Part shown: piece by piece, positions 2,389-37,658 of the stretch
Numbering within the stretch: position 1 is the stretch's first letter
How the letters are laid out: every line of letters begins with the position of its first letter
Sequence record: OP752703.1
Strand: one strand, 5' to 3'
Length of the DNA: 64,000 nucleotides
Notes under the pieces: generated by a model
What the model was told of the DNA's origin: nothing
Seen by the model: the letters and a program-made list of their open reading frames with translations, nothing else
Databases searched by the model: none
Translations under genes and position numbers: made by a program

Positions 2389-2397
2389 AGGATTCCC

Positions 2398-24052: not shown

Positions 24053-24073
24053 CATACACACCACAGCTATGCA

Positions 24074-24108: not shown

Positions 24109-24234
24109 GGGGAGGGGTGAAGGCAAAACAAGTTTGAGTTTTTAAAGACTTTCTTTTTATTTTGTTGTGGAATCGCCCGTAGCCCTATGGCTCAAGCCTC
24201 GATATGGACACAGACAAAAAACATTTTACCCCCT

Positions 24235-24377: not shown

Positions 24378-24419
24378 TTCAAATTTTTCCCAAATTTTTC
24401 TTGCGGCCAGACCTTTTTC

Positions 24420-24635
24420 TTATCCTAATAGAGCATCTAGGTAGTGGACAACCTTCTTGATTACCACAGGAAGAACCTCTCTATTGGCATAAAAGTCCAC
24501 ATGTTTGTAATTACCATCCCTTAGATAGCGGTGATTATCTTTTAGGTATTCCACTACGGTCATTTTGCGGCTGTTGGCGGCAACACAATCTTCCCATAGT
24601 ATTGATTGAACTTTTATTTCGTTATCACATGCCAC
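24420..24635 (-). CDS. Micro-ORF array protein (GTG start likely)
   Basis: C-term IKKVVHYLDALLG. Confidence 0.7.
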   Translation of the reverse strand: MACDNEIKVQSILWEDCVAANSRKMTVVEYLKDNHRYLRDGNYKHVDFYANREVLPVVIKKVVHYLDALLG

Positions 24636-24640
24636 GGCGA

Positions 24641-24862
24641 TTAATCCTTTATCAGATGGGTATCGATTACCCACATCATATGTTTGATGTATGTGAGACG
24701 GTAGAAGTCATATTCTTTTCTAAACCTTCCGTATTCTTCGACATATGATAGTGGGTTATAGTCAAAGCTTGCGAATGCGGCCCCACCTTCCAATATATTA
24801 CGAGCGATATCGGTTTTGTTGTGGAACTTTATGAAATGTACGTCAACTACTGGCGGGCGCAT
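24641..24862 (-). CDS. Micro-ORF array protein
   Basis: C-term IKHMMWVIDTHL. Confidence 0.75.
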   Translation of the reverse strand: MRPPVVDVHFIKFHNKTDIARNILEGGAAFASFDYNPLSYVEEYGRFRKEYDFYRLTYIKHMMWVIDTHLIKD

Positions 24863-25145
24863 GATCCTCTCCGAATAGTTCAATGAACCATCCTTTATGC
24901 TTTAGGTTGATAGCGTATAGGGAACGATATTTCGTATCGGCTCTATTTCTACACTCTGGCCCACCGAATGCCTCAATGTATAACTTTAGGTCGTAATCGT
25001 ATTTGATGAAGTCAAGAGCGATTTCGGTGTACTCTGTCCCACGATTACTGATCTTACCCCAACTATCTTCTACGTTTTCTATAGTGTAGTTTGCATTTAG
25101 CTTTCTTGGGCTAGCGAGGACTACACCCATATTGACTAATTTCAT
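24843..25145 (-). CDS. Micro-ORF array protein
   Basis: AGGAG RBS; LKHKGWFIELF. Confidence 0.8.
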   Translation of the reverse strand: MKLVNMGVVLASPRKLNANYTIENVEDSWGKISNRGTEYTEIALDFIKYDYDLKLYIEAFGGPECRNRADTKYRSLYAINLKHKGWFIELFGEDHAPASS

Positions 25146-25391
25146 TTATTCTCCTAGATGCTGGTCATAAAAGTACATAAGCTTCCACTTACGGACGGTT
25201 TGTTTAGCGTATGTTAAATTGTAGTTTCCACTAATGTATGCTGCCTGAATACCTTTGAAGATCATATCATATAACTCTGTTGACCCTATTAGGATAGTGC
25301 TTCGGGTGGAAAGCGTATCAAAAGTATAGGAACACCATATGGCATTCCTTTCTTCGCTACTTAGATTGTAGTATTCATCATCTGTAATCAT
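25146..25391 (-). CDS. Micro-ORF array protein, paralog of 31344-31622
   Basis: IWCS, LSTR, WKLMYFYD. Confidence 0.85.
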   Translation of the reverse strand: MITDDEYYNLSSEERNAIWCSYTFDTLSTRSTILIGSTELYDMIFKGIQAAYISGNYNLTYAKQTVRKWKLMYFYDQHLGE

Positions 25392-25392
25392 A

Positions 25393-25578
25393 TCATTTGT
25401 TTGAAAGAAGGTTAAATGACCATGTGATGTATTTTATCTCAATCATCTGATATAGGCAATAAGCTGCACGTTTGTGTTGGCCTAATAGTTTCCTATAAGC
25501 ATAGGCACCACCGGATGCTATACTGGCTATTTGCTGCGCGTCAATGAAACGTGATGGGGGAGAGTAGCGGTAGTTCAT
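25393..25578 (-). CDS. Micro-ORF array protein
   Basis: IKYITWSFNLL; ATGA overlap. Confidence 0.75.
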   Translation of the reverse strand: MNYRYSPPSRFIDAQQIASIASGGAYAYRKLLGQHKRAAYCLYQMIEIKYITWSFNLLSNK

Positions 25579-25772
25579 CCTTCATCTACCATTGTCATGA
25601 GGAATCGATAGAACTTCGTGTTGTTCATATACCATTTGCAGTAGGAACGATCCATTCTATTGTGCAGAGTTAGACGCTTCACGGTTAGTTCATGAGTTCC
25701 ATGAATGTCAATGAGAACTTTAGCGTTGTGAAGAGACAGAGGCATTTTTCGATTATCCGGTAGAGAGTTCAT
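25575..25772 (-). CDS. Micro-ORF array protein
   Basis: TKFYRFLMTMVDE; TAATG overlap. Confidence 0.75.
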   Translation of the reverse strand: MNSLPDNRKMPLSLHNAKVLIDIHGTHELTVKRLTLHNRMDRSYCKWYMNNTKFYRFLMTMVDEG

Positions 25773-25975
25773 TATTTTACTCTACGTTTTAGGGAAGTCA
25801 AGAACCAATCATATGACTCTTTGATTAGTTCCATACTCCAACCAGAGTACTTAATGTATTTCATCTTTTCTGAATTATAGTCCCAAAGGTTGTGGCCGAA
25901 GATACGGTGTTGCATGAACTTCTCAGGACTTTCATTTCTTAGGAGGGTTCGAGCATACTCGAATTTGTCTCTCAT
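25772..25975 (-). CDS. Micro-ORF array protein (start moved)
   Basis: ATGA overlap; motif weak. Confidence 0.75.
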   Translation of the reverse strand: MRDKFEYARTLLRNESPEKFMQHRIFGHNLWDYNSEKMKYIKYSGWSMELIKESYDWFLTSLKRRVK

Positions 25976-26166
25976 TGTGGTGGAGTCTCTTGTAGAAGTA
26001 TGATCTGCCATGCGGTGTTCTTGAATTGTAGTAGGGATTGGGGGACGTAGGTCTTCTTTATTTTATTAAAATGAAACGCAACATTACACAAGTATCGATA
26101 TGGATCGAACTTGCATTCCCTATAAGCAAAATATTTTGATTTCTCAAATTCCTTAGAGTTAATCAT
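25972..26166 (-). CDS. Micro-ORF array protein
   Basis: FKNTAWQIILLQE. Confidence 0.75.
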   Translation of the reverse strand: MINSKEFEKSKYFAYRECKFDPYRYLCNVAFHFNKIKKTYVPQSLLQFKNTAWQIILLQETPPQ

Positions 26167-26167
26167 T

Positions 26168-26401
26168 TCAATCCTTTAAGTAGTGCATATACCAGAAGAC
26201 GTGGCGGATAGTTCTCATATGATATATCGAATAGTATGGGCAATTTTGTTGAAACCAGTACGATTCAATGTATTCTTCTGGTTTGGTATCTATGGAGAGA
26301 AAGTGATATGCGCCTTTAGTAATTAGCTCAACAATATTGTTAGATGTATATCTGGTTCTCGCTGATGCTTCGTAGAAATCATACAGGGTAGATAATATCA
26401 T
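26168..26401 (-). CDS. Micro-ORF array protein
   Basis: GAGGA RBS; IRHVFWYMHYLKD. Confidence 0.8.
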   Translation of the reverse strand: MILSTLYDFYEASARTRYTSNNIVELITKGAYHFLSIDTKPEEYIESYWFQQNCPYYSIYHMRTIRHVFWYMHYLKD

Positions 26402-26404
26402 CCT

Positions 26405-26602
26405 TTAATCCTCATTGAACCAGTATATGGTTTCATTACATAGTTCTTCAAACTCTTCCTGAGATAGTTCTTTTCCGGCCTTCTCGGCTTCATAGGCTAC
26501 GCATCTAGCTACCTGATAATGGAACTTTAGGTAAGCTGGTCGATTATCTTCTCTTACGTTGTTTTGATAGAATTGTACGGCTCGTTCAGTAATGTCATGC
26601 AT
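26405..26602 (-). CDS. Micro-ORF array protein (start moved)
   Basis: 8-nt overlap; motif weak. Confidence 0.72.
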   Translation of the reverse strand: MHDITERAVQFYQNNVREDNRPAYLKFHYQVARCVAYEAEKAGKELSQEEFEELCNETIYWFNED

Positions 26603-26825
26603 TGATTTGGTTCTCTGTGGGATTGTCAATGATAAGGTCTAAGAAGAATATAGCAGTCTTTCTATTGACTAGAAATCTAAAAAAGTCCTTATGGTAGTTG
26701 TTACCATGAATTAGCTGCAAACACGTAGTAGTCAACTCTTCAACGGTGGTATTACAATTAAGTATACCATTCACGTTAGCTACTAGCAAGGAGATATCAT
26801 TCCAGTTATTAGAAGACGCGTTCAT
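26595..26825 (-). CDS. Micro-ORF array protein
   Basis: RKTAIFFLDLIID. Confidence 0.8.
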   Translation of the reverse strand: MNASSNNWNDISLLVANVNGILNCNTTVEELTTTCLQLIHGNNYHKDFFRFLVNRKTAIFFLDLIIDNPTENQINA

Positions 26826-27057
26826 TGGTGTCTATACAAGAGTCCATGAAGAAGAGGGCCACCTTTCTATGGTTTAGGTACGGCGGGAAGTAGCCCCTTG
26901 CATGAACATTACCTAGGCTAGCGTTGGCTACAATCATTAAATCCATATCACCGCGTTCAATGATGTTATTGGCGTTTTCCTTGATATTAGAAGTATCAAT
27001 CGGCCCGATAGAGAAACCACCGCCACTGTATTTTGCAATAATGTCTTTATGGATCAT
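26809..27057 (-). CDS. Micro-ORF array protein
   Basis: RKVALFFMDSCID. Confidence 0.8.
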   Translation of the reverse strand: MIHKDIIAKYSGGGFSIGPIDTSNIKENANNIIERGDMDLMIVANASLGNVHARGYFPPYLNHRKVALFFMDSCIDTNERVF

Positions 27058-27066
27058 GATTCTTTG

Positions 27067-27252
27067 TCATTCCTCGTTCAGTAGCATAGCCCAGCCAACA
27101 TACTTTGATCGTCGGATATAATGTTCGGCATAGTTAATACCTACAACATTATGGGAGTCAAATCTTGACCTCAAATACTCGTAAGGCTCCATATGGCCTT
27201 TAATATTGATGGATTCTTCATACCAAGTAATTCGTATTAACTCCGTTTTCAT
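27067..27252 (-). CDS. Micro-ORF array protein (start moved)
   Basis: ATGA overlap; SKYVGWAMLLNEE. Confidence 0.78.
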   Translation of the reverse strand: MKTELIRITWYEESINIKGHMEPYEYLRSRFDSHNVVGINYAEHYIRRSKYVGWAMLLNEE

Positions 27253-27482
27253 GAGTATGCATCCAATCGTAGGTCTAGCATCCACGTGTTAAGTTTGCTG
27301 CCGTTAGAATAGAGGGGTAGGTATTGGTCTTCCAATGAGCAGTTAATACCGGAATAAATGCGGACATATTCAGTCAAGTCAAAGCCTAGATAGGCATTGT
27401 GATAGGCATTTTCCCATCGCATTTCCATTGGAGTTGTTGCCACGGAATAGAACTTCTTTAGTTTTGGCGTATTCATTATCAA
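27249..27482 (-). CDS. Micro-ORF array protein
   Basis: SKLNTWMLDLRLD. Confidence 0.78.
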   Translation of the reverse strand: MIMNTPKLKKFYSVATTPMEMRWENAYHNAYLGFDLTEYVRIYSGINCSLEDQYLPLYSNGSKLNTWMLDLRLDAYS

Positions 27483-27703
27483 TCCAAAATGATGTAATTC
27501 ATTGCGGACAGAGTATACCTGACCAGAAGTAGGCGGTCAATATCATATCCATAGGAAGGGGTGAACGAACTACAGAAGCTCTCTGAGGTATACCCACGGT
27601 TAATGAACGCTTCGGCATTCTTGACATACTTGTCTCGGGGGTTTAGGCCGAGGTAGCAAATATTTCTATCAGAATGTAGTCTGTATTGGGTCATATCAGT
27701 CAT
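27479..27703 (-). CDS. Micro-ORF array protein
   Basis: VRYTLSAMNYIILD. Confidence 0.78.
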   Translation of the reverse strand: MTDMTQYRLHSDRNICYLGLNPRDKYVKNAEAFINRGYTSESFCSSFTPSYGYDIDRLLLVRYTLSAMNYIILD

Positions 27704-27923
27704 GACCTACTGCTAGCTTATGCTTGTTCAACAAGGACTTATGACCATTCTTAATCTGTGTCCAAGTTTTATCATTGACCTTATTTCTATTATATTTGGC
27801 TTCAAGGCGCATGAACTCAATGCTGTAGGCGATCAGATATTCGTCCGGGGTAGTAGCATTAGGCATATCCCACGTGAACATTCTAGACCAGCCGGTTTGA
27901 GGGTTGTGGAGTTCTAGTAGCAT
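27696..27923 (-). CDS. Micro-ORF array protein
   Basis: Packing; motif weak. Confidence 0.72.
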   Translation of the reverse strand: MLLELHNPQTGWSRMFTWDMPNATTPDEYLIAYSIEFMRLEAKYNRNKVNDKTWTQIKNGHKSLLNKHKLAVGHD

Positions 27924-27925
27924 AG

Positions 27926-28105
27926 TTAATCCATTGAGTCCAAGTAAAACATTATCAACTTAATTTTGTCTTTCAGTAATTCTCTGGTAGTATTGTTTCT
28001 AAGATTATGAATATACTTCGGCATATCATAATTTGACTCTTTGAACCACAGAGCGCTAAACCATGCAGATTCTTGTACTGAGTGTTTGATATTTTTGTCA
28101 AACAT
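27926..28105 (-). CDS. Micro-ORF array protein, 59 aa, not in track
   Basis: MFDKNIKHSVQESAWF...IKLIMFYLDSMD; 8-nt overlap. Confidence 0.8.
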   Translation of the reverse strand: MFDKNIKHSVQESAWFSALWFKESNYDMPKYIHNLRNNTTRELLKDKIKLIMFYLDSMD

Positions 28106-28295
28106 CAGTCAAAGACTCCATGGCTCGAACGACTTGCTTGACTTCCACTGAAAGTGACATGATGTATCCACGTCCTTGAATAATCCTAGGACAGAAGTGG
28201 TCGCAGAACTCGGACACCGTAACTTCTTGATTTAAATAGGAATTTGCGGTCTTATAGAGTCTACCGTGTGCTATGGTAAGTACTTTCTTATTCAT
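28098..28295 (-). CDS. Micro-ORF array protein
   Basis: VKQVVRAMESLTD. Confidence 0.75.
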   Translation of the reverse strand: MNKKVLTIAHGRLYKTANSYLNQEVTVSEFCDHFCPRIIQGRGYIMSLSVEVKQVVRAMESLTDV

Positions 28296-28479
28296 CGATT
28301 AAATCCAGAAAAGACGTTTGTATCTTCATTGTAACTAGTAAAGAGATTGAATATCCTTGCCAATAAGAATTGTGTAGGTGTCTGTCTATATACCAATTAG
28401 CATAAGCTTCATATCGGTCACCAAATGTATACAAGTCATAAGCGACTTTAAGTAGAGAAGGTGTATCAGTAAGTGACAT
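28288..28479 (-). CDS. Micro-ORF array protein
   Basis: MKIQTSFLDLIDE. Confidence 0.75.
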   Translation of the reverse strand: MSLTDTPSLLKVAYDLYTFGDRYEAYANWYIDRHLHNSYWQGYSISLLVTMKIQTSFLDLIDE

Positions 28480-28485
28480 ATTAGA

Positions 28486-28680
28486 TTACGGATAATATTC
28501 GAGGATATGAATTGCTCGCTTACGGCGAATGATGTTACTAAATTCATCAGGATAGTGAACCGTATCTGCGATATTCCACGCTAAGTTATTGATACCCCTG
28601 ACTTTTAGTTCATACGTAGTAGCTATACTGAAAGAATTAACAAGGAATTCTGAATCTAGGAATTTATTTTTGTTATCCAT
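28486..28680 (-). CDS. Micro-ORF array protein
   Basis: RKRAIHILEYY. Confidence 0.75.
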   Translation of the reverse strand: MDNKNKFLDSEFLVNSFSIATTYELKVRGINNLAWNIADTVHYPDEFSNIIRRKRAIHILEYYP

Positions 28681-28853
28681 TATTGCGATTCTCTCACTAA
28701 TAGTTCCCTATATTCTGCCATTTCGTAATAATCCATAAGCATTATTCTAGTCTTTGCCTTAATCCAGCGCTGTAAACGCTTATCCGAGTAGAAATAGCAT
28801 GCGGATATTGTGAAACTCACCTGATAATTCATATTCGCCGCTGTATCATCCAT
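28680..28853 (-). CDS. Micro-ORF array protein (start moved)
   Basis: TAATG overlap; AKTRIMLMDYYE. Confidence 0.75.
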   Translation of the reverse strand: MDDTAANMNYQVSFTISACYFYSDKRLQRWIKAKTRIMLMDYYEMAEYRELLVRESQ

Positions 28854-29047
28854 TAGGTACGACCCTTGAAATGGGTATGATACCATAGCACCATTTTGGT
28901 GGTTTGGGTAGCATCAGTATGAACAAAGTTCAACGTCTTTCCGCTAGCAATAATGTATTTCGCATAGATGGCAGAATAGTGTTGCCAGCCAATACGTTCA
29001 GCTTTTTTGAAGGATGCATCGTCATATTTGGCATTTCGATTCGTCAT
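28853..29047 (-). CDS. Micro-ORF array protein
   Basis: TKMVLWYHTHF. Confidence 0.75.
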   Translation of the reverse strand: MTNRNAKYDDASFKKAERIGWQHYSAIYAKYIIASGKTLNFVHTDATQTTKMVLWYHTHFKGRT

Positions 29048-29228
29048 GTATAATTAACTCTCTGAAAAATAAAGAAATTTTCTTAAAACTTATAGATTCA
29101 CGTTTATTATTATTGTATGAAAACTGATAATTGAGATATTCATTGCCACTAGTGAGGGTATTAGAATGATTATTCAGCATAATCCATAGATTACTTGGCA
29201 AGAAAAACATATCTGCACTCTTTTTCAT
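29022..29228 (-). CDS. Micro-ORF array protein (start moved)
   Basis: ATGA overlap; KKISLFFRELII. Confidence 0.75.
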   Translation of the reverse strand: MKKSADMFFLPSNLWIMLNNHSNTLTSGNEYLNYQFSYNNNKRESISFKKISLFFRELIIHDESKCQI

Positions 29229-29425
29229 TCTAAATGATCCATACAATGAATTACATTTTTGAATAATACATGGAAATCATCAGTAATTTCCGTTCTACTG
29301 TAGGTATAAATGGAATTATTCAGAACATAAGATGCCACAGTGGAGTTTCTTCTAATTAAATTCCCACTATATTTCAAAACATCCGACATATTCAAAAAAT
29401 TAGAGGCAGTCTTACGGACGTTCAT
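29225..29425 (-). CDS. Micro-ORF array protein
   Basis: FKNVIHCMDHLE. Confidence 0.78.
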   Translation of the reverse strand: MNVRKTASNFLNMSDVLKYSGNLIRRNSTVASYVLNNSIYTYSRTEITDDFHVLFKNVIHCMDHLE

Positions 29426-29657
29426 CTAGTAAATCTCTACAAAATGATGCCATTTTAACCACAGGGAAGAATGAACTGTAGTAACTCTTAACGAATTTAG
29501 GAAATATGCTATTAACATACGACTCCATAGTCGATTCATTGACTACAGTAGACACGCTAATGTTATATTGAACAGTTTCCATTATCAATGGTGGATTAAC
29601 TGGCGATGTGATGCGTTTCATAGAACCCCTGAAATGAGAAACCCCAAGCGGGGGCAT
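29412..29657 (-). CDS. Micro-ORF array protein
   Basis: VKMASFCRDLLDE. Confidence 0.75.
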   Translation of the reverse strand: MPPLGVSHFRGSMKRITSPVNPPLIMETVQYNISVSTVVNESTMESYVNSIFPKFVKSYYSSFFPVVKMASFCRDLLDERP

Positions 29658-29681
29658 GGGGTAATTATAGCAAACCGGATT

Positions 29682-29894
29682 TTAGACTGCAACAGGAATA
29701 TAGCTGTCAAGATAGAAGATTCGCAACTTAGCATCCATCAAATAATTGATCTTATTTGTCATAGATGACCTCTCTTGATTACGATTCAAAGGCAACCAAA
29801 TACCCGCAACAATGGATAGGTCGGATGTAGTAGGATTTACATAAACGGACAAGATTCTGTTGTATACAACGGTGTTATACTGCAAATCATTCAT
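29682..29894 (-). CDS. Micro-ORF array protein
   Basis: DAKLRIFYLDSY. Confidence 0.78.
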   Translation of the reverse strand: MNDLQYNTVVYNRILSVYVNPTTSDLSIVAGIWLPLNRNQERSSMTNKINYLMDAKLRIFYLDSYIPVAV

Positions 29895-30103
29895 TCGTTG
29901 GTTTCCAGATCGAAGATGAACATAGTATGCTTCCTACCTAGAATGTTGTCAAGCGCACCGAAATGCGTATACGCTATTCCACGAAGATTATACGCTTCAC
30001 TAATGTAAGGGAATGCATCTTTAATCAAATCCTTTATACTAACTCCAATTTTTATAAGATGGAGAGCTTCTTCAAATAGAAATTCTTGATATGTGTTAGC
30101 CAT
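29891..30103 (-). CDS. Micro-ORF array protein
   Basis: RKHTMFIFDLE. Confidence 0.78.
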   Translation of the reverse strand: MANTYQEFLFEEALHLIKIGVSIKDLIKDAFPYISEAYNLRGIAYTHFGALDNILGRKHTMFIFDLETNE

Positions 30104-30104
30104 A

Positions 30105-30383
30105 TCAAGTCAACCTAATGTCGTTAAAGAATAGTACTGTTTTAAGATCGGAAATCGCAATGGATGCAGGCTTAATCTCAAAGACAAACTCGCGGGCATA
30201 CTGCCTTGCAATAGTCTGCACCTGTTCATTATTGAACTTTCTAATGGACTTGCCAGCCGTCAATCGGTCAACACTCGCAAATAGACTAGTCCTTAGAGTA
30301 TACTTGGACGGGATGTAGGGGGCGTAGTATGTACTTCTGCCCGGTACTATTTTATTAGGATAAACTTGCATGTCATTTCTCAT
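30105..30383 (-). CDS. Micro-ORF array protein
   Basis: SDLKTVLFFNDI. Confidence 0.8.
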   Translation of the reverse strand: MRNDMQVYPNKIVPGRSTYYAPYIPSKYTLRTSLFASVDRLTAGKSIRKFNNEQVQTIARQYAREFVFEIKPASIAISDLKTVLFFNDIRLT

Positions 30384-30594
30384 TCAAATTCAATGTGTGG
30401 ACTACGTACTTGGAAGCCATGTTTTCGTCTAACGTTTCATACGCGTTATACTTCGAGTTTCTATAATGCTGGTAAGTGAAGCGGATAAATTGAACCGCAT
30501 CCGTGATAGCAATCTCAATATCCCTAGCATCACTCAAAATATTATCATACAGAATTTCCATCGAAGTACCGAATCTCATTCGATTACCCATCAT
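30373..30594 (-). CDS. Micro-ORF array protein
   Basis: SKYVVHTLNLNE. Confidence 0.78.
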   Translation of the reverse strand: MMGNRMRFGTSMEILYDNILSDARDIEIAITDAVQFIRFTYQHYRNSKYNAYETLDENMASKYVVHTLNLNEK

Positions 30595-30848
30595 TCCACC
30601 ACTAGATTATGCAGATGCAAATGGTACTTACAATCGAAGATACTGTTCAGAATGTAGGATTTCTTGTATTCAAGATGATTCATATACCCCTTAGTGATGT
30701 AGTCCATGAATGAATTATAATTATTCCTGATACTAGCAGTCAAGTTCTGGTAGATCACATCACGGGTATATTCATGACAGTATTCATTACTGAAAGTGAA
30801 ATAATCACTTCGTGATGTAGCATAGACTTCGTATGTCTTATCGTTCAT
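30591..30848 (-). CDS. Micro-ORF array protein, tandem paralog of next ORF
   Basis: EYCHE, IFDCKYHLHLHNLV. Confidence 0.85.
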   Translation of the reverse strand: MNDKTYEVYATSRSDYFTFSNEYCHEYTRDVIYQNLTASIRNNYNSFMDYITKGYMNHLEYKKSYILNSIFDCKYHLHLHNLVVE

Positions 30849-31104
30849 AGTTAGCTACTAGTTCGTGTAGGTGTAAATGATACTTCGCGTCTAGGATTTC
30901 GTTAACCCTAGCACCCATATGATGGGCGATATCCTCCGCACCCTCTTCAATACATTGAAGAAACAGAGAATAATGCCTAGTGATAGAGCGACAATTAATA
31001 AGCATCATATGAGTATAGGTCTTCTCTTGGCAGTATTCAACACTCCATTCATAAGATCGACTACGATTACAGGCGTACATACCACCATATTTCTTATAGT
31101 TCAT
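30838..31104 (-). CDS. Micro-ORF array protein
   Basis: EYCQE, ILDAKYHLHLHELV. Confidence 0.85.
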   Translation of the reverse strand: MNYKKYGGMYACNRSRSYEWSVEYCQEKTYTHMMLINCRSITRHYSLFLQCIEEGAEDIAHHMGARVNEILDAKYHLHLHELVANYER

Positions 31105-31360
31105 CGACTAAATCCGCACAGAAACAAACATAACGATAGTCATTGATCGTCTGCATGAAGTTGGTAGGCTGATGACTATAATAGAGAGTAATCGCGTCCA
31201 CAGAAGATTTGAAGTAGGTAGTAGCACTATCCAGCCCTCGCTGAATATGACTAGTCACATTCTCTAGCTGTTCCGGTCTGATTTGCTTGTATGCATTCAT
31301 CTTATAACTCTCAACCGCCCTTAAATATTCATCGACGGCAACTTTAAGTGGAGTGGTCAT
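31094..31360 (-). CDS. Micro-ORF array protein
   Basis: INDYRYVCFCADLVDE. Confidence 0.85.
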   Translation of the reverse strand: MTTPLKVAVDEYLRAVESYKMNAYKQIRPEQLENVTSHIQRGLDSATTYFKSSVDAITLYYSHQPTNFMQTINDYRYVCFCADLVDEL

Positions 31361-31622
31361 TATGCGCTAGTCTGTGGTAAAAGTAAATCATCTTCCAGTT
31401 TCTAATGCGCTTGTCTCTGCCATTCAGGTTAGGACCAGCATATTCCTCAGCAACGTTACTCTTAATGGAATCCAGAAAGTCGGCCCCATTAATGTGTAAG
31501 AATCGCGTACTGATATAGTTCCACTGAAACGAACACCATATTTTGTCCCTAAGCTCTGCATCCAGATCATAGAATGCAAACATGTCCATTTCATTAATGT
31601 CAGTAACCTGTTTCTTCTTCAT
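31344..31622 (-). CDS. Micro-ORF array protein, paralog of 25146-25391
   Basis: IWCS, ISTR, WKMIYFY. Confidence 0.85.
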   Translation of the reverse strand: MKKKQVTDINEMDMFAFYDLDAELRDKIWCSFQWNYISTRFLHINGADFLDSIKSNVAEEYAGPNLNGRDKRIRNWKMIYFYHRLAHNDHST

Positions 31623-31837
31623 CCTAAATCCACATGATGGGCGCAGTATAACACACGTTTCCAGTGTACGACTTCTTCCAACAGAAGATGACGCGACTGT
31701 TCACCGAACATATAAGCATCACGAATATAGTCCACTGAAATCTGAATCATCCCATTAAATGTAGTTCCTTTATGATGGTGCTGCATCATATTATAAAAGA
31801 AATAATGGTGACTATCGGGCTTTTTCATATTCATCAT
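31619..31837 (-). CDS. Micro-ORF array protein
   Basis: VHWKRVLYCAHHVD. Confidence 0.8.
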   Translation of the reverse strand: MMNMKKPDSHHYFFYNMMQHHHKGTTFNGMIQISVDYIRDAYMFGEQSRHLLLEEVVHWKRVLYCAHHVDLG

Positions 31838-32066
31838 CTATTAGTTGACAGGCATGAACCAAGTAACGCCAGTCATTAAGCTCAACACTCAAAGTAGGAT
31901 TCGGTTCAAACCTATGTTCTTTATACAGTCTCTTGCAAGCTTGTTGGACAGTACGAAAGTAAGATCGGCGAGCGTTTCCTTCAAAGCCTCTGGCGTTCAG
32001 GTTTTCCCACTGTTCTACTCTACGCCAATCATATCGGCGCTCGGCAAGCACTTCTCTGTCAGCCAT
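31812..32066 (-). CDS. Micro-ORF array protein (start moved)
   Basis: LNDWRYLVHACQLIDD. Confidence 0.85.
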   Translation of the reverse strand: MADREVLAERRYDWRRVEQWENLNARGFEGNARRSYFRTVQQACKRLYKEHRFEPNPTLSVELNDWRYLVHACQLIDDEYEKAR

Positions 32067-32298
32067 TCCCTTTATCCTCTGTAATAATATCGCATACAAA
32101 CAGTACGTAACGCCAATCGCCTAACTCTCGTTTCAGAAAGTTCCCCGACAAGTAACCTTCTTTGTTATTCTCGTAACACTCTCTAACGCTTAAAGTTGTC
32201 AGCTTCGAGTAGTCGCCGGAAAACGGTCTTGTCAAGTATCCTTCCCACTGTATGTTTCGCCTCTGGCAATAACCATAGTCGATATCATATACGCCCAT
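32059..32298 (-). CDS. Micro-ORF array protein
   Basis: LGDWRYVLFVCDII. Confidence 0.85.
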   Translation of the reverse strand: MGVYDIDYGYCQRRNIQWEGYLTRPFSGDYSKLTTLSVRECYENNKEGYLSGNFLKRELGDWRYVLFVCDIITEDKGNG

Positions 32299-32552
32299 TA
32301 GTCATCGTCCTTTAGAAGGTCACATACAAACAGTACATAACGCCAGTCGCCCAAATGGTTATTCGGTATCTTTCTTACAAGAGGGTCTGCCTCCATCCAA
32401 GCTTCGTAATAACGCCTAATACCAACGGTAACCGTAGGGTCCATAGACATATCTTTACCATTACTATGTCTATTAGAGAATCCACTAAGCTGGTCATGGC
32501 GTCTATAAGCTAGTTGTGTAAGGTCAAACATCTTAGTAAGGTCCAACATCAT
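32298..32552 (-). CDS. Micro-ORF array protein
   Basis: GGAGG RBS; LGDWRYVLFVCDLL. Confidence 0.87.
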   Translation of the reverse strand: MMLDLTKMFDLTQLAYRRHDQLSGFSNRHSNGKDMSMDPTVTVGIRRYYEAWMEADPLVRKIPNNHLGDWRYVLFVCDLLKDDD

Positions 32553-32585
32553 CTATCCTCCCGTAAGATGCCAGTATACCGTAAA

Positions 32586-32849
32586 TTACAAGCGTCCACA
32601 AGCCTCGTCATCAACAATATCACATACGAATAACTTATAGCGTAAGTGAGACAGTCTGGCGTTCAATAGGCTTTGGTTTATTTCCGTACAACAGGCGTTA
32701 TGTTCGTTATAAGCATTAATCACAAACGTCTGTAAGCTGTATACGTTTCCGTTTAAAGCTTCTCCCGTAGGGAAGTCGTCACGCATACGGTTCAATAGCC
32801 TCTGTTTGAAATGAGGGTGTAGGATTACGGTAGTCTTTGTTATGGTCAT
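32586..32849 (-). CDS. Micro-ORF array protein
   Basis: LSHLRYKLFVCDIVDD. Confidence 0.85.
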   Translation of the reverse strand: MTITKTTVILHPHFKQRLLNRMRDDFPTGEALNGNVYSLQTFVINAYNEHNACCTEINQSLLNARLSHLRYKLFVCDIVDDEACGRL

Positions 32850-33175
32850 TACTGTCTATCGTAAAGGTTTTCGAGGATTAGTGTGGCCGCGTGTAGTTCG
32901 TATCGTAGATCAATCGTCTTTCTGTAATCGTTGCTATTCTTGTGCAATCGTCTCTGTATGGATTCCAAAATATCGTCCAGTCTATCCTTGGATAGATAAC
33001 GATCACACATCCTGATCTGTGTTTTGTAAAAATGATCTGCTCTGTCTCTGTATGCTGAAACACTGAACTGATACTTTGATTTGTATTGATAGCTCTGTAT
33101 GTACGAAGGGATTTTGTAGGTGGAATTGAATAGTTTGTTAAGATAACGTTGGTGGAGAGCAGCAGCTAGGGTCAT
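32849..33175 (-). CDS. Micro-ORF array protein
   Basis: IDLRYELHAATLILE. Confidence 0.82.
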   Translation of the reverse strand: MTLAAALHQRYLNKLFNSTYKIPSYIQSYQYKSKYQFSVSAYRDRADHFYKTQIRMCDRYLSKDRLDDILESIQRRLHKNSNDYRKTIDLRYELHAATLILENLYDRQ

Positions 33176-33217
33176 AAAAAATTTTCCGTGCCGTAATGTG
33201 GTAACTAAACAAACTGC

Positions 33218-33409
33218 TTACGCAGTTTGTTGGAAGAGCAGATCATAGCAGAATATTCTATACTTAATCGTTATTGGAAGTTTAGACGTAGGTCTAAAGC
33301 GAGTAAGATTCGGGGTGGGAAAGACAGTCTTTTGAGTGGGAGTCAGGGCGTTATAATTTTGACAGCATATACGGAACATGTCACTATAATCTTGCTCAGA
33401 AAACGTCAT
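33218..33409 (-). CDS. Micro-ORF array protein (start moved from 33565)
   Basis: MTFSEQ start; IKYRIFCYDLL. Confidence 0.78.
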   Translation of the reverse strand: MTFSEQDYSDMFRICCQNYNALTPTQKTVFPTPNLTRFRPTSKLPITIKYRIFCYDLLFQQTA

Positions 33410-33578
33410 CGCGGTCAATCCCATAGTCAATGTAGATGAAGTACTTTCGGCAGATGGCCGAGTATCGTCTAATACGCACATCATCCGACTTACTGAGCCA
33501 ACTCCACACATGCTTATGCACGAATGATTCAATTGTATGGAAACGTTGCATATCGTACACTTCACGTGCGATACTCAT
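33396..33578 (-). CDS. Micro-ORF array protein
   Basis: ATGA overlap; CRKYFIYIDY. Confidence 0.75.
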   Translation of the reverse strand: MSIAREVYDMQRFHTIESFVHKHVWSWLSKSDDVRIRRYSAICRKYFIYIDYGIDRDDVF

Positions 33579-33814
33579 TGTTGATTCTCTGCATGAAGCT
33601 CTAGGAAGAATGCGAAGGTCTTAACCACTCGGATGTACGCATGCGGATTATCCTTGAACACACCCGATTTGGCAAAGTTACCTTCTAGGATAACATCACC
33701 ATAAGTCTGCAAATAGTATTCACGGGTGCTGTGTATAAGGTACTGACGAGCGTTCTCGAAAAGACGCTCTCCCATGGTACGCTGTTCTAGGGTTTTAGGA
33801 TTATCATCAGTCAT
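33575..33814 (-). CDS. Micro-ORF array protein
   Basis: VKTFAFFLELH. Confidence 0.8.
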   Translation of the reverse strand: MTDDNPKTLEQRTMGERLFENARQYLIHSTREYYLQTYGDVILEGNFAKSGVFKDNPHAYIRVVKTFAFFLELHAENQQ

Positions 33815-34050
33815 AGGTAATTGTACTCAGGCGTTGAGCGTAAATTATACTGAGGCTCGCATACGAAGTCAAGGCAGAAAATGTAAGCTTTAATTTTAAT
33901 ATGAAACAGCATAAATCCTTTCGGACTTACATTTATGTTCACACGCCTAACGTAATCACAGACAGGACTTACATTATCTTTAGGTGTTAGCTCAAAATAT
34001 TCCTGTATGCCTTCTAGTTGTTTGGTGAGGTTAATTCGTTCGCTAGCCAT
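33811..34050 (-). CDS. Micro-ORF array protein (start moved)
   Basis: IKAYIFCLDFV. Confidence 0.75.
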   Translation of the reverse strand: MASERINLTKQLEGIQEYFELTPKDNVSPVCDYVRRVNINVSPKGFMLFHIKIKAYIFCLDFVCEPQYNLRSTPEYNYL

Positions 34051-34274
34051 GGAATTGTTCCCTGTTCTCCAAACCACATGTGGACTGCATAGAACTGCAT
34101 TTTGTAAGTTGCAGCCATCCAATCTTCTCCCTTATCAGTATACACTCTCACGTATCCTGCTGCTAGGTTTGAATACACTTCCACGTACTTTGGCATATTA
34201 ATTTTTGCCATCTGGCGTTCTAGCTTATCAACGCATGAATCAAATGAGGAAATTCGGGTTGGTCTGCCTCTCAT
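34014..34274 (-). CDS. Micro-ORF array protein
   Basis: AGGAG RBS; YKMQFYAVHMW. Confidence 0.78.
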   Translation of the reverse strand: MRGRPTRISSFDSCVDKLERQMAKINMPKYVEVYSNLAAGYVRVYTDKGEDWMAATYKMQFYAVHMWFGEQGTIPWLANELTSPNN

Positions 34275-34377
34275 AGTTCGTCTCCTACTACATCAACGTA
34301 GTGTAGCACTAATTTTCCGCTCTGGTGAGTCCCGATCCCTCTCATATAACTTCATCGATTCAATTTCGAGAATTTCT

Positions 34378-34551
34378 TCAACAGTCTGTGTCTTCCTGCG
34401 CAGTACACTCTGGACTATCTGTAATAAAAATGTTGTCGAGGATTTCGCCATAAAATATAAAATGTTTGTATTTGAGGATTGAAGCATAGTCTTTCTTACT
34501 AGCCAATGAATGGATGATAGCTACTAAGTTTGCTGAAAAGTTTGTGGTCAC
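34378..34551 (-). CDS. Micro-ORF array protein, 57 aa, GTG start, not in track
   Basis: GTGA overlap; ILKYKHFIFYGEILD. Confidence 0.75.
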   Translation of the reverse strand: MTTNFSANLVAIIHSLASKKDYASILKYKHFIFYGEILDNIFITDSPECTAQEDTDC

Positions 34552-34763
34552 GGTTCTTCCTTTAGATATATTTGCTGTTTAAGCAATGTGACCATATCTA
34601 TGTTGTAATCTTCACTCTGAGCGATAATCTGAGTCTTCAAAGTAAGATATTTGTCATATGTGAACTTACCGACAGTAGTCCCTCCGTTGTTTGCATCACG
34701 AAACATCAAAGAGTTTGTATACTGGTTCCTAGCTAACTTCATACTAGAATTGAACTGTCTCAC
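34548..34763 (-). CDS. Micro-ORF array protein
   Basis: LKQQIYLKE. Confidence 0.75.
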   Translation of the reverse strand: MRQFNSSMKLARNQYTNSLMFRDANNGGTTVGKFTYDKYLTLKTQIIAQSEDYNIDMVTLLKQQIYLKEEP

Positions 34764-34981
34764 AGATCGTCTCCGATTGTATCACAGAAGAATACTGCAA
34801 TCTTAATATCCGACATTCGTGCGGAATCCACAGGCGTTATAGTGCCATGGGTCATCTTCGCATAGTGGATGATAATATTTGCAGTAGTTCCATAATGAAT
34901 CTTATAGTACGGAGAGTTGCACATGTATTCTACCATTGCATCCCATAAGTCAGTTCTTCGTAAGTGAATGCGACTACTCAT
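34760..34981 (-). CDS. Micro-ORF array protein
   Basis: SDIKIAVFFCDTI. Confidence 0.82.
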   Translation of the reverse strand: MSSRIHLRRTDLWDAMVEYMCNSPYYKIHYGTTANIIIHYAKMTHGTITPVDSARMSDIKIAVFFCDTIGDDL

Positions 34982-35219
34982 TTGCCATATCCATGTAATG
35001 TATACGAACTTTTTCTACTTGTGGTCGATTTCTCTTTTCGTTAGCATGAAGCTTACGAGCGATAAAACCAGTTGTTGACGTAGGCGCTTTGTATACTTTG
35101 TAGTTAGGATCATAGTATCGAATGATCTTAGTAATACAATCCAATATATTAGGCTCTACTGCATAACTTCTAGAAATACAAGAGGTCCATATTGCCGAGT
35201 TTGCGATAACCATTTTCAT
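34974..35219 (-). CDS. Micro-ORF array protein
   Basis: EKVRIHYMDMANE. Confidence 0.78.
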   Translation of the reverse strand: MKMVIANSAIWTSCISRSYAVEPNILDCITKIIRYYDPNYKVYKAPTSTTGFIARKLHANEKRNRPQVEKVRIHYMDMANE

Positions 35220-35434
35220 TTCTTTCTTTTCGCTCTTTCCGGTTCACATAGGGATACAGCATGGGCGTAATGACGCCAATCATTGACTTGGTAATTCAAA
35301 TCTTCAAGGTTGTATCGTTTCTCGGAATAGAAGCTCATAATGCGTTCGCTCACGTATTTCATCGTGTAGGCTTCGGTTCTCTTACCTGCACGTTCCATAG
35401 CTAGTTTTAAGTTTTCATTTGCGTCGAAATTCAT
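35216..35434 (-). CDS. Micro-ORF array protein
   Basis: VNDWRHYAHAVSL. Confidence 0.82.
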   Translation of the reverse strand: MNFDANENLKLAMERAGKRTEAYTMKYVSERIMSFYSEKRYNLEDLNYQVNDWRHYAHAVSLCEPERAKRKK

Positions 35435-35667
35435 TATACATTATCCATGCAAAAGATGAAGTGCTTCCAGTCCAGAACACTACAGTATCGTGCTTTACCT
35501 ACATCACTATCCCACGAATGACCAGTTTCTCTTAAGCTTTCTTGTGCCATGTTTACGTGACTCGCAAATCTTTCTAAGCTCGCATAGTGATCTTGCCTGT
35601 TATAGGAGATAGCTTTATTTTTCAATGCAATCTCTAGGTTACTGTTGCATTTAATTTTATTACTCAT
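35434..35667 (-). CDS. Micro-ORF array protein (start moved)
   Basis: ATGA overlap; VLDWKHFIFCMDNV. Confidence 0.82.
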   Translation of the reverse strand: MSNKIKCNSNLEIALKNKAISYNRQDHYASLERFASHVNMAQESLRETGHSWDSDVGKARYCSVLDWKHFIFCMDNV

Positions 35668-35855
35668 TCTAACTCCATGATGCACATATGGTAAATTACG
35701 TATTTGGAGAACTGGCGTTGATTGAATTCATACTCACCGCTAGCACTTCGCTTGAAGCATTCCTCTTCCATACTAATACCTTGTGCGTAATTAGGCTTTA
35801 ATGCTTTCAGATACTTGCATGCGGTATTGGCGAGGTCATTGGCAGATTTAATCAC
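35664..35855 (-). CDS. Micro-ORF array protein
   Basis: SKYVIYHMCIME. Confidence 0.78.
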   Translation of the reverse strand: MIKSANDLANTACKYLKALKPNYAQGISMEEECFKRSASGEYEFNQRQFSKYVIYHMCIMELE

Positions 35856-36057
35856 TTAGGTAATCCGGGCATAGGTCCATTTGAAGTAGGACAGATTTAG
35901 CTTCAAGTACATTCAACAAAAAGTCACTATTGGTGGTTACGTCTCTAGTGAAACGATCCCTCCAAGCTTTGTGTAGAATTTGTGCTTCATGCATTAGCAC
36001 CGTTTCTTTAGATGCACCTTGGGGGTAGTATGTTTTTAGTAGGTTGGTCTTCATCAT
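35848..36057 (-). CDS. Micro-ORF array protein (start moved)
   Basis: ATGA overlap; LEAKSVLLQMDL. Confidence 0.8.
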   Translation of the reverse strand: MMKTNLLKTYYPQGASKETVLMHEAQILHKAWRDRFTRDVTTNSDFLLNVLEAKSVLLQMDLCPDYLSD

Positions 36058-36284
36058 TCCTCCCACATAACATCTACAGCGCCAATATACCACTTTCGCA
36101 TTCTGATTGATTGCTCTAACTGATCTTTCGCAAACACTTCCTTATCAAGGATAGCATTTTGGATAGCCACAACCTGACCTGTAATATACGTTTCAATACA
36201 TTCAGGGTGGGACCATGGGTATTCTCGGTTAACCAGCTTTGTGGCATTACTGAAATACTTTGACATGTTAGTCATACGGTTCAT
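36054..36284 (-). CDS. Micro-ORF array protein
   Basis: RKWYIGAVDVMWEE. Confidence 0.8.
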   Translation of the reverse strand: MNRMTNMSKYFSNATKLVNREYPWSHPECIETYITGQVVAIQNAILDKEVFAKDQLEQSIRMRKWYIGAVDVMWEE

Positions 36285-36302
36285 CCGTTAGTGTGTCTCG
36301 AA

Positions 36303-36339
36303 ATTATACCAAACGACAAAGGGACCGTAAAGCCCCTTT
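36303..36339 (-). promoter_or_regulatory. Hairpin-embedded promoter heading the main array
   Basis: TTTACG-17-TATAAT inside AAAGGGG...CCCTTT; followed by ACACAC. Confidence 0.72.
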
Positions 36340-36605
36340 CATTCGTATACGATTAATTGTGCGGCAAACAGATAGTTCTTGAATGTGATAAGACGATACA
36401 CGTGATACCAGTTCACACCCTCCATATCAGCCGTATATGGACTATTCTTATAAGCTGTATACGCAATGTCATGGATTGAACGAATGTAGTAATTTATTCG
36501 CCCTTCCTTATCCTTCATTGTTGGACAATCAGCGAATACTTGTTCAAATCTAGGAATAAGGTTGTAGGTGTATTTGCTAAGTTGATGTACGTATAGATCG
36601 GTCAT
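36339..36605 (-). CDS. Micro-ORF array protein
   Basis: FKNYLFAAQLIV. Confidence 0.8.
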   Translation of the reverse strand: MTDLYVHQLSKYTYNLIPRFEQVFADCPTMKDKEGRINYYIRSIHDIAYTAYKNSPYTADMEGVNWYHVYRLITFKNYLFAAQLIVYE

Positions 36606-36919
36606 TTTAAAAAATCCAACCCCATTATCATTGCTTTGTATACGATGGAGTAGGGGCGATTCACTTCACATACCGTGGGTATCACTTCTGCTAGGCGTCT
36701 AATATTGGCTACACGATAAGTCTCACATGCTCTTTCCCACCTTGCAGTCTTAGCTGGTGATCGTTTGATTCTCTTATTTTTGGGAGGATGGTAGTGTACT
36801 CTTTCGCAATAATCTGTAACCATTTCACCGGTAAAATAGTGTGGCTTACGTGAATGCATATCGTAAAGCTCTTCCCATTGATTGGTATTCATATATGGAG
36901 TCATATAGAGGGTAGCCAA
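36602..36919 (-). CDS. Micro-ORF array protein (start may be downstream)
   Basis: YKAMIMGLDFL. Confidence 0.72.
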   Translation of the reverse strand: MATLYMTPYMNTNQWEELYDMHSRKPHYFTGEMVTDYCERVHYHPPKNKRIKRSPAKTARWERACETYRVANIRRLAEVIPTVCEVNRPYSIVYKAMIMGLDFLK

Positions 36920-37085
36920 AGTGAGTGCGCGATAGCTCCATCTTCCTTTTCACCCTATATTGCGGTGTGTTCATAAAATCGCGTAGGAAGTGAGCATTCA
37001 ACATAAATGATTTACCAGTATTGCGAGTTATTGGCATTACCGATAATAGTGTCTGTCCCTTGTTTATTTGAGATAAGTCGAACAT
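36846..37085 (-). CDS. Hypothetical protein, first gene after the 37139 promoter
   Basis: TTGCCA-17-TATAAT upstream. Confidence 0.68.
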   Translation of the reverse strand: MFDLSQINKGQTLLSVMPITRNTGKSFMLNAHFLRDFMNTPQYRVKRKMELSRTHFGYPLYDSIYEYQSMGRALRYAFT

Positions 37086-37110
37086 AAATGTGGCCTGTTG
37101 ATTGCCGTGA

Positions 37111-37160
37111 ATTATAGACCTTCTGATAGGGCTTGGCAAGACCTTAGAGTGTGCTATAAT
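37111..37160. promoter_or_regulatory. Divergent promoter pair with shared -35 region
   Basis: - strand TTGCCA-17-TATAAT; + strand TTGGCA-16-TATAAT around CTTGGCAAG. Confidence 0.72.
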
Positions 37161-37166
37161 ATCGCC

Positions 37167-37457
37167 ATGGAACCAAAAACATTTAGCGATATGTCAGCCC
37201 AACTATACGTCATGCAGCATGTCAAGACGATCATGAGCTATTACAAGAAGCCGACTCGAAAGGGCTATTCATCTATCATAACGGCCAAAAAGAATGTGCA
37301 GCGTGTGTTGATGGTGGTGGAGAATGTGAAGCCAGATAAGCGACTGCTAAGAGATTCGACGTGGAGAATGAATCAATATCCAGTGGAACGAGACAGAAAG
37401 AAGAAAAGGAAGCGACCAAGTAAGTCGCCTTATACCTTATTTGGGGATGATCTTTGA
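37167..37457 (+). CDS. Basic hypothetical protein, probably leaderless
   Basis: TATAAT-N6-ATG. Confidence 0.68.
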   Translation: MEPKTFSDMSAQLYVMQHVKTIMSYYKKPTRKGYSSIITAKKNVQRVLMVVENVKPDKRLLRDSTWRMNQYPVERDRKKKRKRPSKSPYTLFGDDL

Positions 37458-37658
37458 CTTGACGATCATTCGGTAGTGTTTCTCATTGAAACAGTCCATG
37501 ACCAGTAGGTGCAGACCGATCTTGGTGTTCTGATGATAGAAGGCTCTATATGACTTGTTATGCGAAGGTAGTCCGTGACGATTGAAGGCTCTATGTCGGA
37601 TATACAGATCGAGATTGTCGTCTGAGTAAATTTTGCGTTTCTGGCTGAATGTGTTCAT
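37437..37658 (-). CDS. Small hypothetical protein, probably leaderless
   Basis: TTGACT-17-TATAAT-N7-ATG. Confidence 0.7.
   Translation of the reverse strand: MNTFSQKRKIYSDDNLDLYIRHRAFNRHGLPSHNKSYRAFYHQNTKIGLHLLVMDCFNEKHYRMIVKSKIIPK

Follow-up and report, generated by a model that had tools for sequence, protein, structure and literature searches.

The first 64 kb of the genome of Stenotrophomonas phage RAS14 (OP752703.1, 319,635 bp; sewage, India), referred to here as the window, contains a run of 55 tiled, co-oriented open reading frames (ORFs) of 57-115 aa on the minus strand between positions 24420 and 36919 (~12.5 kb). Sequence comparison places a minimum of 38 of the 57 ORFs examined in a single protein family, joined by a short C-terminal motif that is predicted to lie in the last helix. 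Each paralogue is individually conserved among close relatives of the phage, and the shared helix is its most constrained part. We tentatively read the array, with a confidence that stops somewhat short of even, as a lineage-specific, tandemly expanded family of early accessory proteins that combine a constant helix with a variable head. The array represents 55 of the 554 RAS14 ORFs (~10%), and together with a second array elsewhere in the genome it accounts for ~16% of all ORFs. The window matches RAS14 at 100% identity and is likewise 100% identical to phage CM1; a literature search found no publication on either phage. Comparison of portal proteins places RAS14 closest, among sequenced phages, to the Xanthomonas jumbo phages XacN1 (68.5% identity) and Xoo-sp13 (66.5%), two members of a distant T4/Rak2-like clade.

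The shared motif reads K/R-x-x-[ILV]-[FHWY]-x-[MLC]-[DE]-L-h, followed by an acidic tail, and its extended consensus is h(-3)..h(0)-K-x-x-[IL]-[FHW]-h-[MLC]-D-L-h-x-[ED], where h is a hydrophobic residue. A strict form of the pattern ([KR]-x-x-h-[FHWY]-x-h-[DE] within the last 30 residues) was found in 19 of 55 ORFs, or 20 when 34378-34551 replaces an ORF that it overlaps, as compared to 0.60 ± 0.79 in shuffled sequences. Reversed sequences gave a single occurrence, and none was seen among the 118 ORFs of the flanking sets (block 1, 0/68; block 3, 0/50), so that the enrichment anticipated by the initial annotation was borne out. A profile of the motif, built iteratively against decoys so that 1% of sequences would be false positives, matched 27-31 of the 57 ORFs and nothing in the reversed, block 1 or block 3 sets. 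When this profile was run over all 324 small RAS14 ORFs, matches were obtained for 24-25 of 53 in the array, 1 of 33 in the second array and 0 of the 238 others. With a full-length leave-one-out profile, 30 of the 57 ORFs outscored all 30 of their own shuffles (~2 expected). The aligned motif block carried 11.7 bits, compared to 7.4 ± 0.5 for MAFFT alignments of shuffled sequences; K/R was in register in 55 of 57 rows, the aromatic residue in 47 and D/E/N/Q in 45, and K/R, aromatic and D/E occurred jointly in 28 (34 with N/Q permitted). Taken as a union, these tests support 38 of the 57 ORFs as members, with the motif lysine 8-29 aa (median 13) from the C-terminus. The initial annotation had recognized the motif by eye in about 50 ORFs. 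Every peptide that it quoted is present in the gene named and the motif occurs far beyond chance, but it can be demonstrated in only 27-38 of the 57.

The constraint on the motif acts on protein rather than DNA, since third codon positions within it are near random (0.04-0.41 bits) and codon choice is ordinary, AAA/AAG, TTT/TTC and GAT/GAC being used as they are array-wide. D, E and L are enriched 1.75-2.4-fold in the last six residues. A Shine-Dalgarno (SD)-like 4-mer lies upstream of only 15 of 54 genes, and therefore the acidic tail does not appear to be a by-product of the next gene's SD, an explanation that we considered and did not find supported.

Outside the motif, similarity falls away. 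Leave-one-out comparison of the N-terminal parts alone gave a median z of 0.34, with 9 of 56 beating all of their own shuffles, as compared to a mean z of 4.0 at full length (paired comparison, P = 3e-7). The N-terminal signal is thus barely over background and the family-wide signal lies almost wholly in the motif, in agreement with the earlier impression that the N-terminal parts mostly do not align. Homology along the full length across the whole array was rejected for this reason, though sub-clusters do share N-terminal similarity. Mean column identity among the array copies is ~10%.

To follow selection on these genes we used five metagenomic contigs with 93-96% DNA identity (L009, L014, L015/L016/L017 and L018), which were reached via exact-sequence look-ups. 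Compared to L009 (20 genes), omega was 0.28 in frame and 0.92 and 1.34 in the two wrong frames; all 20 scored genes were intact, and the in-gene indels (15, 9 and 3 nt) were all multiples of 3. Compared to L014 (51 orthologue pairs), omega was 0.35 overall, 0.39 for the N-terminal parts and 0.20 for the motif and tail, and amino-acid differences were correspondingly fewer in the motif (15/408, 3.7%) than in the N-terminal parts (298/3242, 9.2%; P = 7e-5). As listed, 46 of the 51 ORFs are intact in L014, and the other five fail only with the longest-ORF start. The same genes were called independently by gene-finders in the five contigs. Low in-frame omega and intact frames show that the array ORFs are real protein-coding genes under purifying selection, and the division into a variable N-terminal part and a conserved C-terminal helix, originally proposed from the RAS14 sequence, is likewise apparent between lineages.

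Among the significant paralogue pairs, five of 11 are immediate neighbours, where 0.4 would be expected (P < 1e-4). This excess points to tandem duplication and upholds the view that one family was expanded serially and mostly in place. By phmmer, full-length similarity unites a group of six, termed DWRY, and the pairs 30591/30838, 25146/31344, 24641/26168 and 26595/26809. Since a single pair in the array is still recognizable in DNA (D1, 51 nt at 78% identity, in the DWRY sub-cluster), most duplications are evidently old. Head-to-tail, near-identical DNA repeats, as left by a recent "genomic accordion" of the T4 tifA kind, were not found in the array.

Single units are nevertheless still being gained, lost and replaced among phages ~93-96% identical in DNA, and gene content varies between these close relatives while the flanks remain syntenic. 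The unit at 24641-24862 (within the ORF listed as 24641-24883) is present only in RAS14, being absent from L014, L015, L016 and L018. A replacement hot spot at 28296-28673 exists in three different states among three lineages: RAS14 has 28486-28680 (KRAIHILE) together with the unannotated 28288-28479 (KIQTSFLD), L014, L015, L016 and L017 have one different 81-aa gene, and L018 has a 28486-like gene and a different 82-aa gene. In addition, the L018 orthologues of 32298-32552 and 32059-32298 are separated by one more DWRY-type paralogue (75 aa, ...DWRYVLFICD...), at the position equivalent to 32298..32299; neither RAS14 nor L014 has this gene.

At a greater distance the family disappears. XacN1, of which we scanned the first 50 kb and the syntenic 35 kb, keeps the synteny of the rightward block 3 (ATP-grasp, PARP-like, ATPase, GMP reductase and thymidylate synthase genes), and its syntenic leftward cluster (XacN1 284752-319558, positions 1689-4357 of that segment) consists of ~9 unrelated small genes with neither array motif. 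Because the syntenic site lacks the family, the 55-gene array would have arisen or expanded after the split from XacN1 and be specific to the RAS14 lineage. In agreement with this restriction, a family profile searched against 1.84 billion representative proteins found only RAS14 proteins or near-identical variants. No distant homologue was found by a word-indexed profile search of 5.8 billion proteins, by scans of IMG/VR and JGI metagenomes or by tblastn against 50,697 phage records. Pfam-A returned no family for any of the 57 members, PHROGs v4 no significant family (three single-member matches, E 5e-4 or weaker), PADLOC no significant family (two single-member matches, E about 0.007-0.01) and a PDB sequence profile search no match at E <= 1. 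The statement that no described family has this layout therefore stands across Pfam, PHROGs, PADLOC, PDB and Foldseek.

AlphaFold2 models of two members from different sub-lineages were both all-alpha with the motif in the last helix. Helices were predicted at residues 5-27, 39-61 and 66-81 of the 32298-32552 product (predicted local distance difference test, pLDDT, 67), where the last helix has the highest pLDDT (block mean 86), and at residues 4-19, 23-33, 38-42 and 45-64 of the 29682-29894 product (pLDDT 57). Foldseek found no match to either model in PDB or BFVD, a result to which the uncertainty of the models gives little weight. The proteins are low in Gly and Pro, rich in Tyr (7.4% vs. 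about 4.2%) and of net charge -5 to +11, and no transmembrane segments were found in them. They are thus probably soluble, all-alpha proteins of ~60-100 aa, as far as the models allow.

Genes of the array are tightly packed, with 42 of 53 junctions overlapping or abutting (the commonest overlaps being of 4 nt, ATGA-type, 1 nt and 8 nt), and its G+C content is 0.36-0.42 as compared to 0.51 in the rightward block at 1-24 kb. It is headed by a sigma70-type promoter at 37111-37139 (minus strand; TTGCCA-17-TATAAT, 11/12), which overlaps back-to-back a plus-strand promoter at 37133-37160 (TTGGCA-16-TATAAT, extended TG) for the divergent rightward block that begins at 37191. The head promoter is identical in L014, where it sits inside a 97%-conserved intergenic stretch, and a possible internal promoter (36303-36331, minus strand; TTTACG-17-TATAAT, 10/12, extended -10 TG) occupies the gap at 36285-36338. 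We scanned the whole RAS14 genome for near-consensus promoters (TTGACA-16/18-TATAAT, at least 11/12) and found 38 of 78 in the 6% of DNA that is intergenic, an ~8-fold enrichment which indicates that RAS14 uses host-type promoters; perfect 12/12 examples include those at window positions 44319, 45149 and 48700. The T4 late-promoter box TATAAATA was not enriched, with nine copies genome-wide of which three are intergenic; RAS14 does not use the T4 late promoter and this box was rejected as a timing marker. The divergent neighbour block encodes ThyA (thymidylate synthase), IMPDH/GMP reductase, an ATP-grasp enzyme and a PARP-like protein (45206-46480, plus strand) in which Pfam recognizes a WGR, a PARP regulatory and a PARP catalytic domain, the last at E = 2e-27; a syntenic counterpart of this protein is annotated in XacN1 as ORF414. 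Given the gene packing, the conserved promoter and the nucleotide-metabolism neighbours, early transcription by host RNA polymerase is most likely. At the level of sequence the array shows the arrangement of a T4-type early accessory region, small co-oriented ORFs behind sigma70-like promoters, and it fits an early, host-polymerase-transcribed, translationally coupled operon.

Individual members, all on the minus strand, are distributed along the array as follows. From the distal end, 24420-24674 (KKVVHYLD) and 24641-24883 (KHMMWVID) carry the motif and are succeeded at 24843-26401 by W-type variants and others. In this second group, support was obtained for 24843-25145 (KHKGWFIE; leave-one-out z 12.8), 25146-25391 (paralogue of 31344-31622), 25393-25578, 25772-26011 and 26168-26401 (paralogue of 24641-24883), and individual support was lacking for 25575-25772 and 25972-26166. 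The strict motif is next found in 26595-26825 (KTAIFFLD), 26809-27057 (KVALFFMD) and 27926-28105 (KLIMFYLD), with leave-one-out support only for 27067-27285, 27479-27703, 27696-27923 and 28098-28295 and none for 26405-26629 and 27249-27482. Beyond the replacement hot spot, 29225-29425 (KNVIHCMD), 29682-29894 (KLRIFYLD) and 29891-30103 (KHTMFIFD) have the strict motif, 30105-30383 is profile-positive, 29022-29246 and the pair 30591-30848/30838-31104 have leave-one-out support, and 28680-28886, 28853-29047, 29412-29657 and 30373-30594 are unsupported.

The DWRY sub-cluster (31094-32849; motif D-W/Y-R-Y-x-x-F/H-x-C-D/Q, phmmer pairwise E 2e-10 to 3e-4) comprises 31094-31360, 31812-32099, 32059-32298, 32298-32552 and 32586-32849, each positive by strict motif, profile and leave-one-out test. 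It also encloses two motif-positive genes of other type, 31344-31622 (the paralogue of 25146-25391) and 31619-31837, and a distant, DWRH-type copy lies at 35216-35434. Toward the promoter, the strict motif recurs in 33218-33565 (KYRIFCYD), 33575-33814 (KTFAFFLE), 33811-34122 (KAYIFCLD), 34378-34551 (KHFIFYGE), 34760-34981 (KIAVFFCD), 34974-35219 (KVRIHYMD) and 35434-35685 (KHFIFCMD); 32849-33175 has leave-one-out support, and no test supports 33396-33578 or 34014-34274. The array terminates at 36919, followed by the plus-strand gene 37191-37457. The initial annotation had extended the array to 37658 with about 57 ORFs; the co-oriented array of 55 is real, but the lone minus-strand ORF at 37437-37658, past the plus-strand gene, shows no family signal (z = -0.2). 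ORF 36846-37139 overlies the promoter region and is doubtful as a gene.

In OP752703.1, 49 of the array ORFs are annotated, all as "hypothetical protein," and several of their starts differ from that of the longest ORF. Two ORFs that the initial annotation had supplied from outside its own ORF list, 27926-28105 and 34378-34551, do carry the motif, but both are in fact annotated in GenBank. The six unannotated ORFs are 26168-26401, 28288-28479, 29022-29246, 31619-31837, 33218-33565 and 34014-34274, and the motif is present in 26168-26401, 31619-31837 and 33218-33565. Where a relative has an orthologue, these ORFs are intact as listed with two exceptions. ORF 34014-34274 is interrupted in L009, yet gene-finders call an 82-86 aa gene there in L009, L014 and L018. 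The long form of 33218-33565 is interrupted in L014, and its true start is probably an internal ATG.

The convergent gap at the distal array end (24053-24419), between block 1 and the array, is rich in the sequence ACCAT, of which 11 plus-strand copies lie at window positions 24104-24377 (0.49 expected in 300 bp), the densest cluster in the genome. Ten of the copies are spaced by 11-13 bp (or 24-29 bp), i.e., about one helical turn, and L014, L015 and L018 likewise carry 11 copies. The cluster resembles a phased set of protein-binding sites, which might be origin-like, iteron-like or regulatory.

The second array lies on the plus strand at RAS14 258261-266389 and consists of ~33 co-oriented ORFs of 70-100 aa. 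It too is an orphan, Tyr-rich (10.1%) family; its motif, K-x-x-h-h-x-Y-[DE]-[FLM], lies mid-protein and precedes a ~25-residue beta-like tail that ends h-x-h-x-Y. Its gene 266177-266389 is absent from three related contigs (L010-L012) and present in a fourth (L013). The second-array profile matched 32 of its own 33 ORFs and 0 of 53 in the first array, and the first-array profile matched 1 of 33 in the second. Weak matches of each profile cluster in the other array and hhalign places the motifs in register, but at P = 0.15; as the calibrated profiles do not cross-match, homology of the arrays was rejected and they are treated as separate families.

Other paralogous groups were noted in RAS14. 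The first ~20 kb of the window has a G+C content of 0.50-0.51, compared to 0.39-0.48 (mostly 0.41-0.45) in the rest of the 320-kb genome, and window positions 1-22000 include a four-member paralogue family (12271-12870, 15103-15720, 16213-16773 and 19039-19662). Two DUF6197 proteins are encoded at 21297-22243, where precomputed calls for the relatives list three DUF6197 genes. A further 12-member cluster of mostly large paralogues (phmmer E < 1e-4) occurs at RAS14 67332-69017, 79023-80639, 194369-203557, 229305-234170 and 244876-247587; from their size and clustering we guess that these may be structural or tail-fibre-like repeats.

Under the reading that we prefer, copies of the array genes arise by tandem duplication, their heads having diverged beyond alignment while the C-terminal helix is held constant, and host RNA polymerase would transcribe the array early in infection, into a single polycistronic message or a few of them. 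The products would probably be dispensable accessory factors in host take-over or counter-defence, with the last helix serving a shared interaction, either with one common partner or between family members, and the heads giving each paralogue its own specificity. From the sequence context, the role of the family is probably in early host interaction. That the last helix is the most constrained part while helices 1 and 2 diverge freely suggests a shared interaction. Helix 3 keeps specific identities, among them two charged residues spaced by one heptad, and this points to an external constraint and, by argument only, favours docking over a pure fold core. An adaptor or docking role is plausible, but a helix that forms the structural core of a mini-fold in rapid divergence would fit equally well.

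Several observations weigh against this interpretation. The other 19 of the 57 ORFs show a degenerate motif by eye (e.g., KIQTSFLDL, KMASFCRDL and RKWYIGAVD), and as a group they are not significant (P = 0.10); among them are the six promoter-proximal genes 34548-34763, 35664-35855, 35848-36093, 36054-36284, 36339-36605 and 36602-36919, for which there is no statistical support. Both structural models are of low confidence (pLDDT as above; predicted template modelling score about 0.3), so that nothing beyond their secondary structure can be used. Most faces of the motif are hydrophobic, and it could be a buried core helix without an external partner. The motif was not found at the end of any large RAS14 protein; this speaks against a generic peptide by which the family and the core machinery would bind one hub, and that candidate was rejected. 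Between close relatives there is no sign of pervasive positive selection, contrary to a simple arms-race expectation. Finally, the early timing is read from promoter consensus and gene context, and a single strong promoter would have to serve 12.5 kb.

A realistic though somewhat doubtful alternative is that the helix does no more than form the folding core of a rapidly diverging mini-protein of three helices, with each paralogue acting singly on a different target and with neither shared partner nor association between members. The hydrophobic motif positions (-3, 0, 4, 7 and 10) have the 3-4 heptad-like spacing typical of helix-bundle cores, the last helix is the best predicted part of the 32298-32552 model, and purifying selection on the N-terminal parts (omega 0.39) implies a conserved function of its own for each paralogue. 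With helices 1 and 2 diverged beyond alignment, however, internal packing alone would be expected to let helix 3 co-vary, and specific identities (K/R, aromatic, D/E/N/Q), two of them at charged positions, are kept instead.

A bolder version of the docking idea, which we regard as improbable, is a combinatorial adaptor library in which the helix docks every member on one hub and the heads capture different host proteins. The hub would be, e.g., a host protease, chaperone, RNA polymerase, ribosome component or phage factor, and the targets would be, e.g., components of defence systems. The family could then be a bacterial-virus counterpart of F-box, SOCS-box and poxvirus PRANC adaptors, and the second 33-gene array could be a parallel library for another hub. 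Similarity to those adaptors, drawn for F-box and SOCS-box proteins already in the initial annotation, holds for the layout in formal terms (numerous paralogues in which a variable part for recognition is joined to a short, constant helical element at the C-terminus) but not for sequence, as no Pfam match of any kind, and hence no F-box or SOCS-box signature, was found in the array proteins. Unlike F-box and SOCS-box proteins, the array proteins are far smaller and have no separate recognition domain. To our knowledge, bacteria lack the cullin-RING partner of such adaptors.

There is little chance that the shared helix joins the proteins into homo- or hetero-oligomers, a scaffold or a lattice of many related subunits. 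A broad hydrophobic helix face, with K1 and D8 one heptad apart like coiled-coil e/g salt-bridge positions, would suit such an assembly, and one tightly coupled operon would yield matched stoichiometry. Against this, single subunits are freely lost, gained and replaced between near-identical phages, which is hard to square with obligate assembly; net charges are widely spread; and the family is absent from XacN1, which has the same virion and replication core.

It is more unlikely still that the motif is a packaging or targeting tag by which the proteins are loaded in the capsid and ejected into the host as a variable anti-defence set. The analogy is with the T4 internal proteins (IPI-III), whose hypervariable locus also combines unrelated-looking small proteins, one short conserved peptide and a plastic arrangement. 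However, in T4 the prohead protease cleaves off the capsid-targeting sequence, which is N-terminal, and the T4 internal-protein genes are late, as packaged phage proteins normally are. The array element is C-terminal, the array lies behind a promoter of host, early-like type and far from the structural genes, and TATAAATA is not enriched in RAS14, so that the array does not resemble the T4 locus in these respects.

We give very little credence to the idea that the ORFs are non-functional, whether as chance ORFs, decayed repeat-protein fragments or neutral "junk" duplicates. The ORFs are without exception orphan and hypothetical, the long-ORF start is wrong for some of them and one or two of those listed are doubtful, but the contrast in omega between the true and wrong frames, frames intact across three lineages, indels in multiples of 3 and independent gene calls in five contigs contradict it. 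Scarcely credible is a motif that is the by-product of a nucleic-acid signal in gene 3' ends (SD, promoter or terminator of the next gene): overlapping or abutting genes do place the next translation-initiation region in each 3' end, and D, E and L are enriched there, but near-random third positions, ordinary synonymous codon use, a motif-to-stop distance that varies over 8-29 codons and the rarity of SD-like 4-mers led us to reject a DNA- or RNA-level origin.

The closest parallels are found in other phages. In T4, the small early accessory gene tifA is amplified in tandem, thereby overcoming the host defence toxIN (Srikant, Guegler & Laub 2022, PMC9391042). Like the array, the T4 dmd-tifA island holds genes that are small (~85 aa), driven by early promoters, dispensable and different between close relatives, the copy number of which shifts by recombination that makes tandem repeats; their function in T4 is counter-defence (PMC9391042). 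Unlike the T4 copies, which are recent, near-identical and of one gene, the array consists of ~55 old, diverged copies under purifying selection, and the array proteins have no sequence similarity to TifA or Dmd. XacN1 has 131 ORFs and 29 tRNAs in each 66-kb terminal repeat, and its small-ORF terminal regions were proposed to act in host take-over, with the SPO1 host-takeover module cited in comparison (Yoshikawa et al. 2018, PMC5852040). RAS14 shares with this member of the same phage clade dense, co-oriented blocks of orphan small ORFs near tRNA genes. It differs in that the scanned parts of XacN1 contain no family member, and the XacN1 report describes no paralogue family (PMC5852040).

A more distant resemblance is to eukaryotic viruses. 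The poxvirus Bcl-2-like family and the multigene families of African swine fever virus are tandemly expanded small, largely helical proteins encoded near a genome end that act in host manipulation. As in the array, their members have diverged down to a structural core and vary between strains, but this is by analogy only, as those viruses belong to a different realm and there is no homology.

A plastic early accessory region in a T4-type phage, and amplification by tandem duplication, are of a kind already known. What is new here is the scale (~55 genes, ~10% of ORFs), the layout of constant helix and variable head, and a second, independent 33-gene expansion in the same genome. Large paralogue families are rare in phage genomes, and in RAS14 one orphan family makes up about a tenth of the ORFs of a jumbo phage. 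The family is in effect a natural experiment, in which dozens of mini-proteins have a constant helix and free heads, each under selection, while units turn over. Even with a helix that is nothing more than a fold core, the family would be a good system in which to study the limits of mini-fold divergence. Should each head recognize a host target of its own, the array would offer a ready collection of small inhibitors or adaptors directed at Stenotrophomonas and Xanthomonas cell biology and defence systems, and a model for how phages may build multigene families as giant eukaryotic viruses do.

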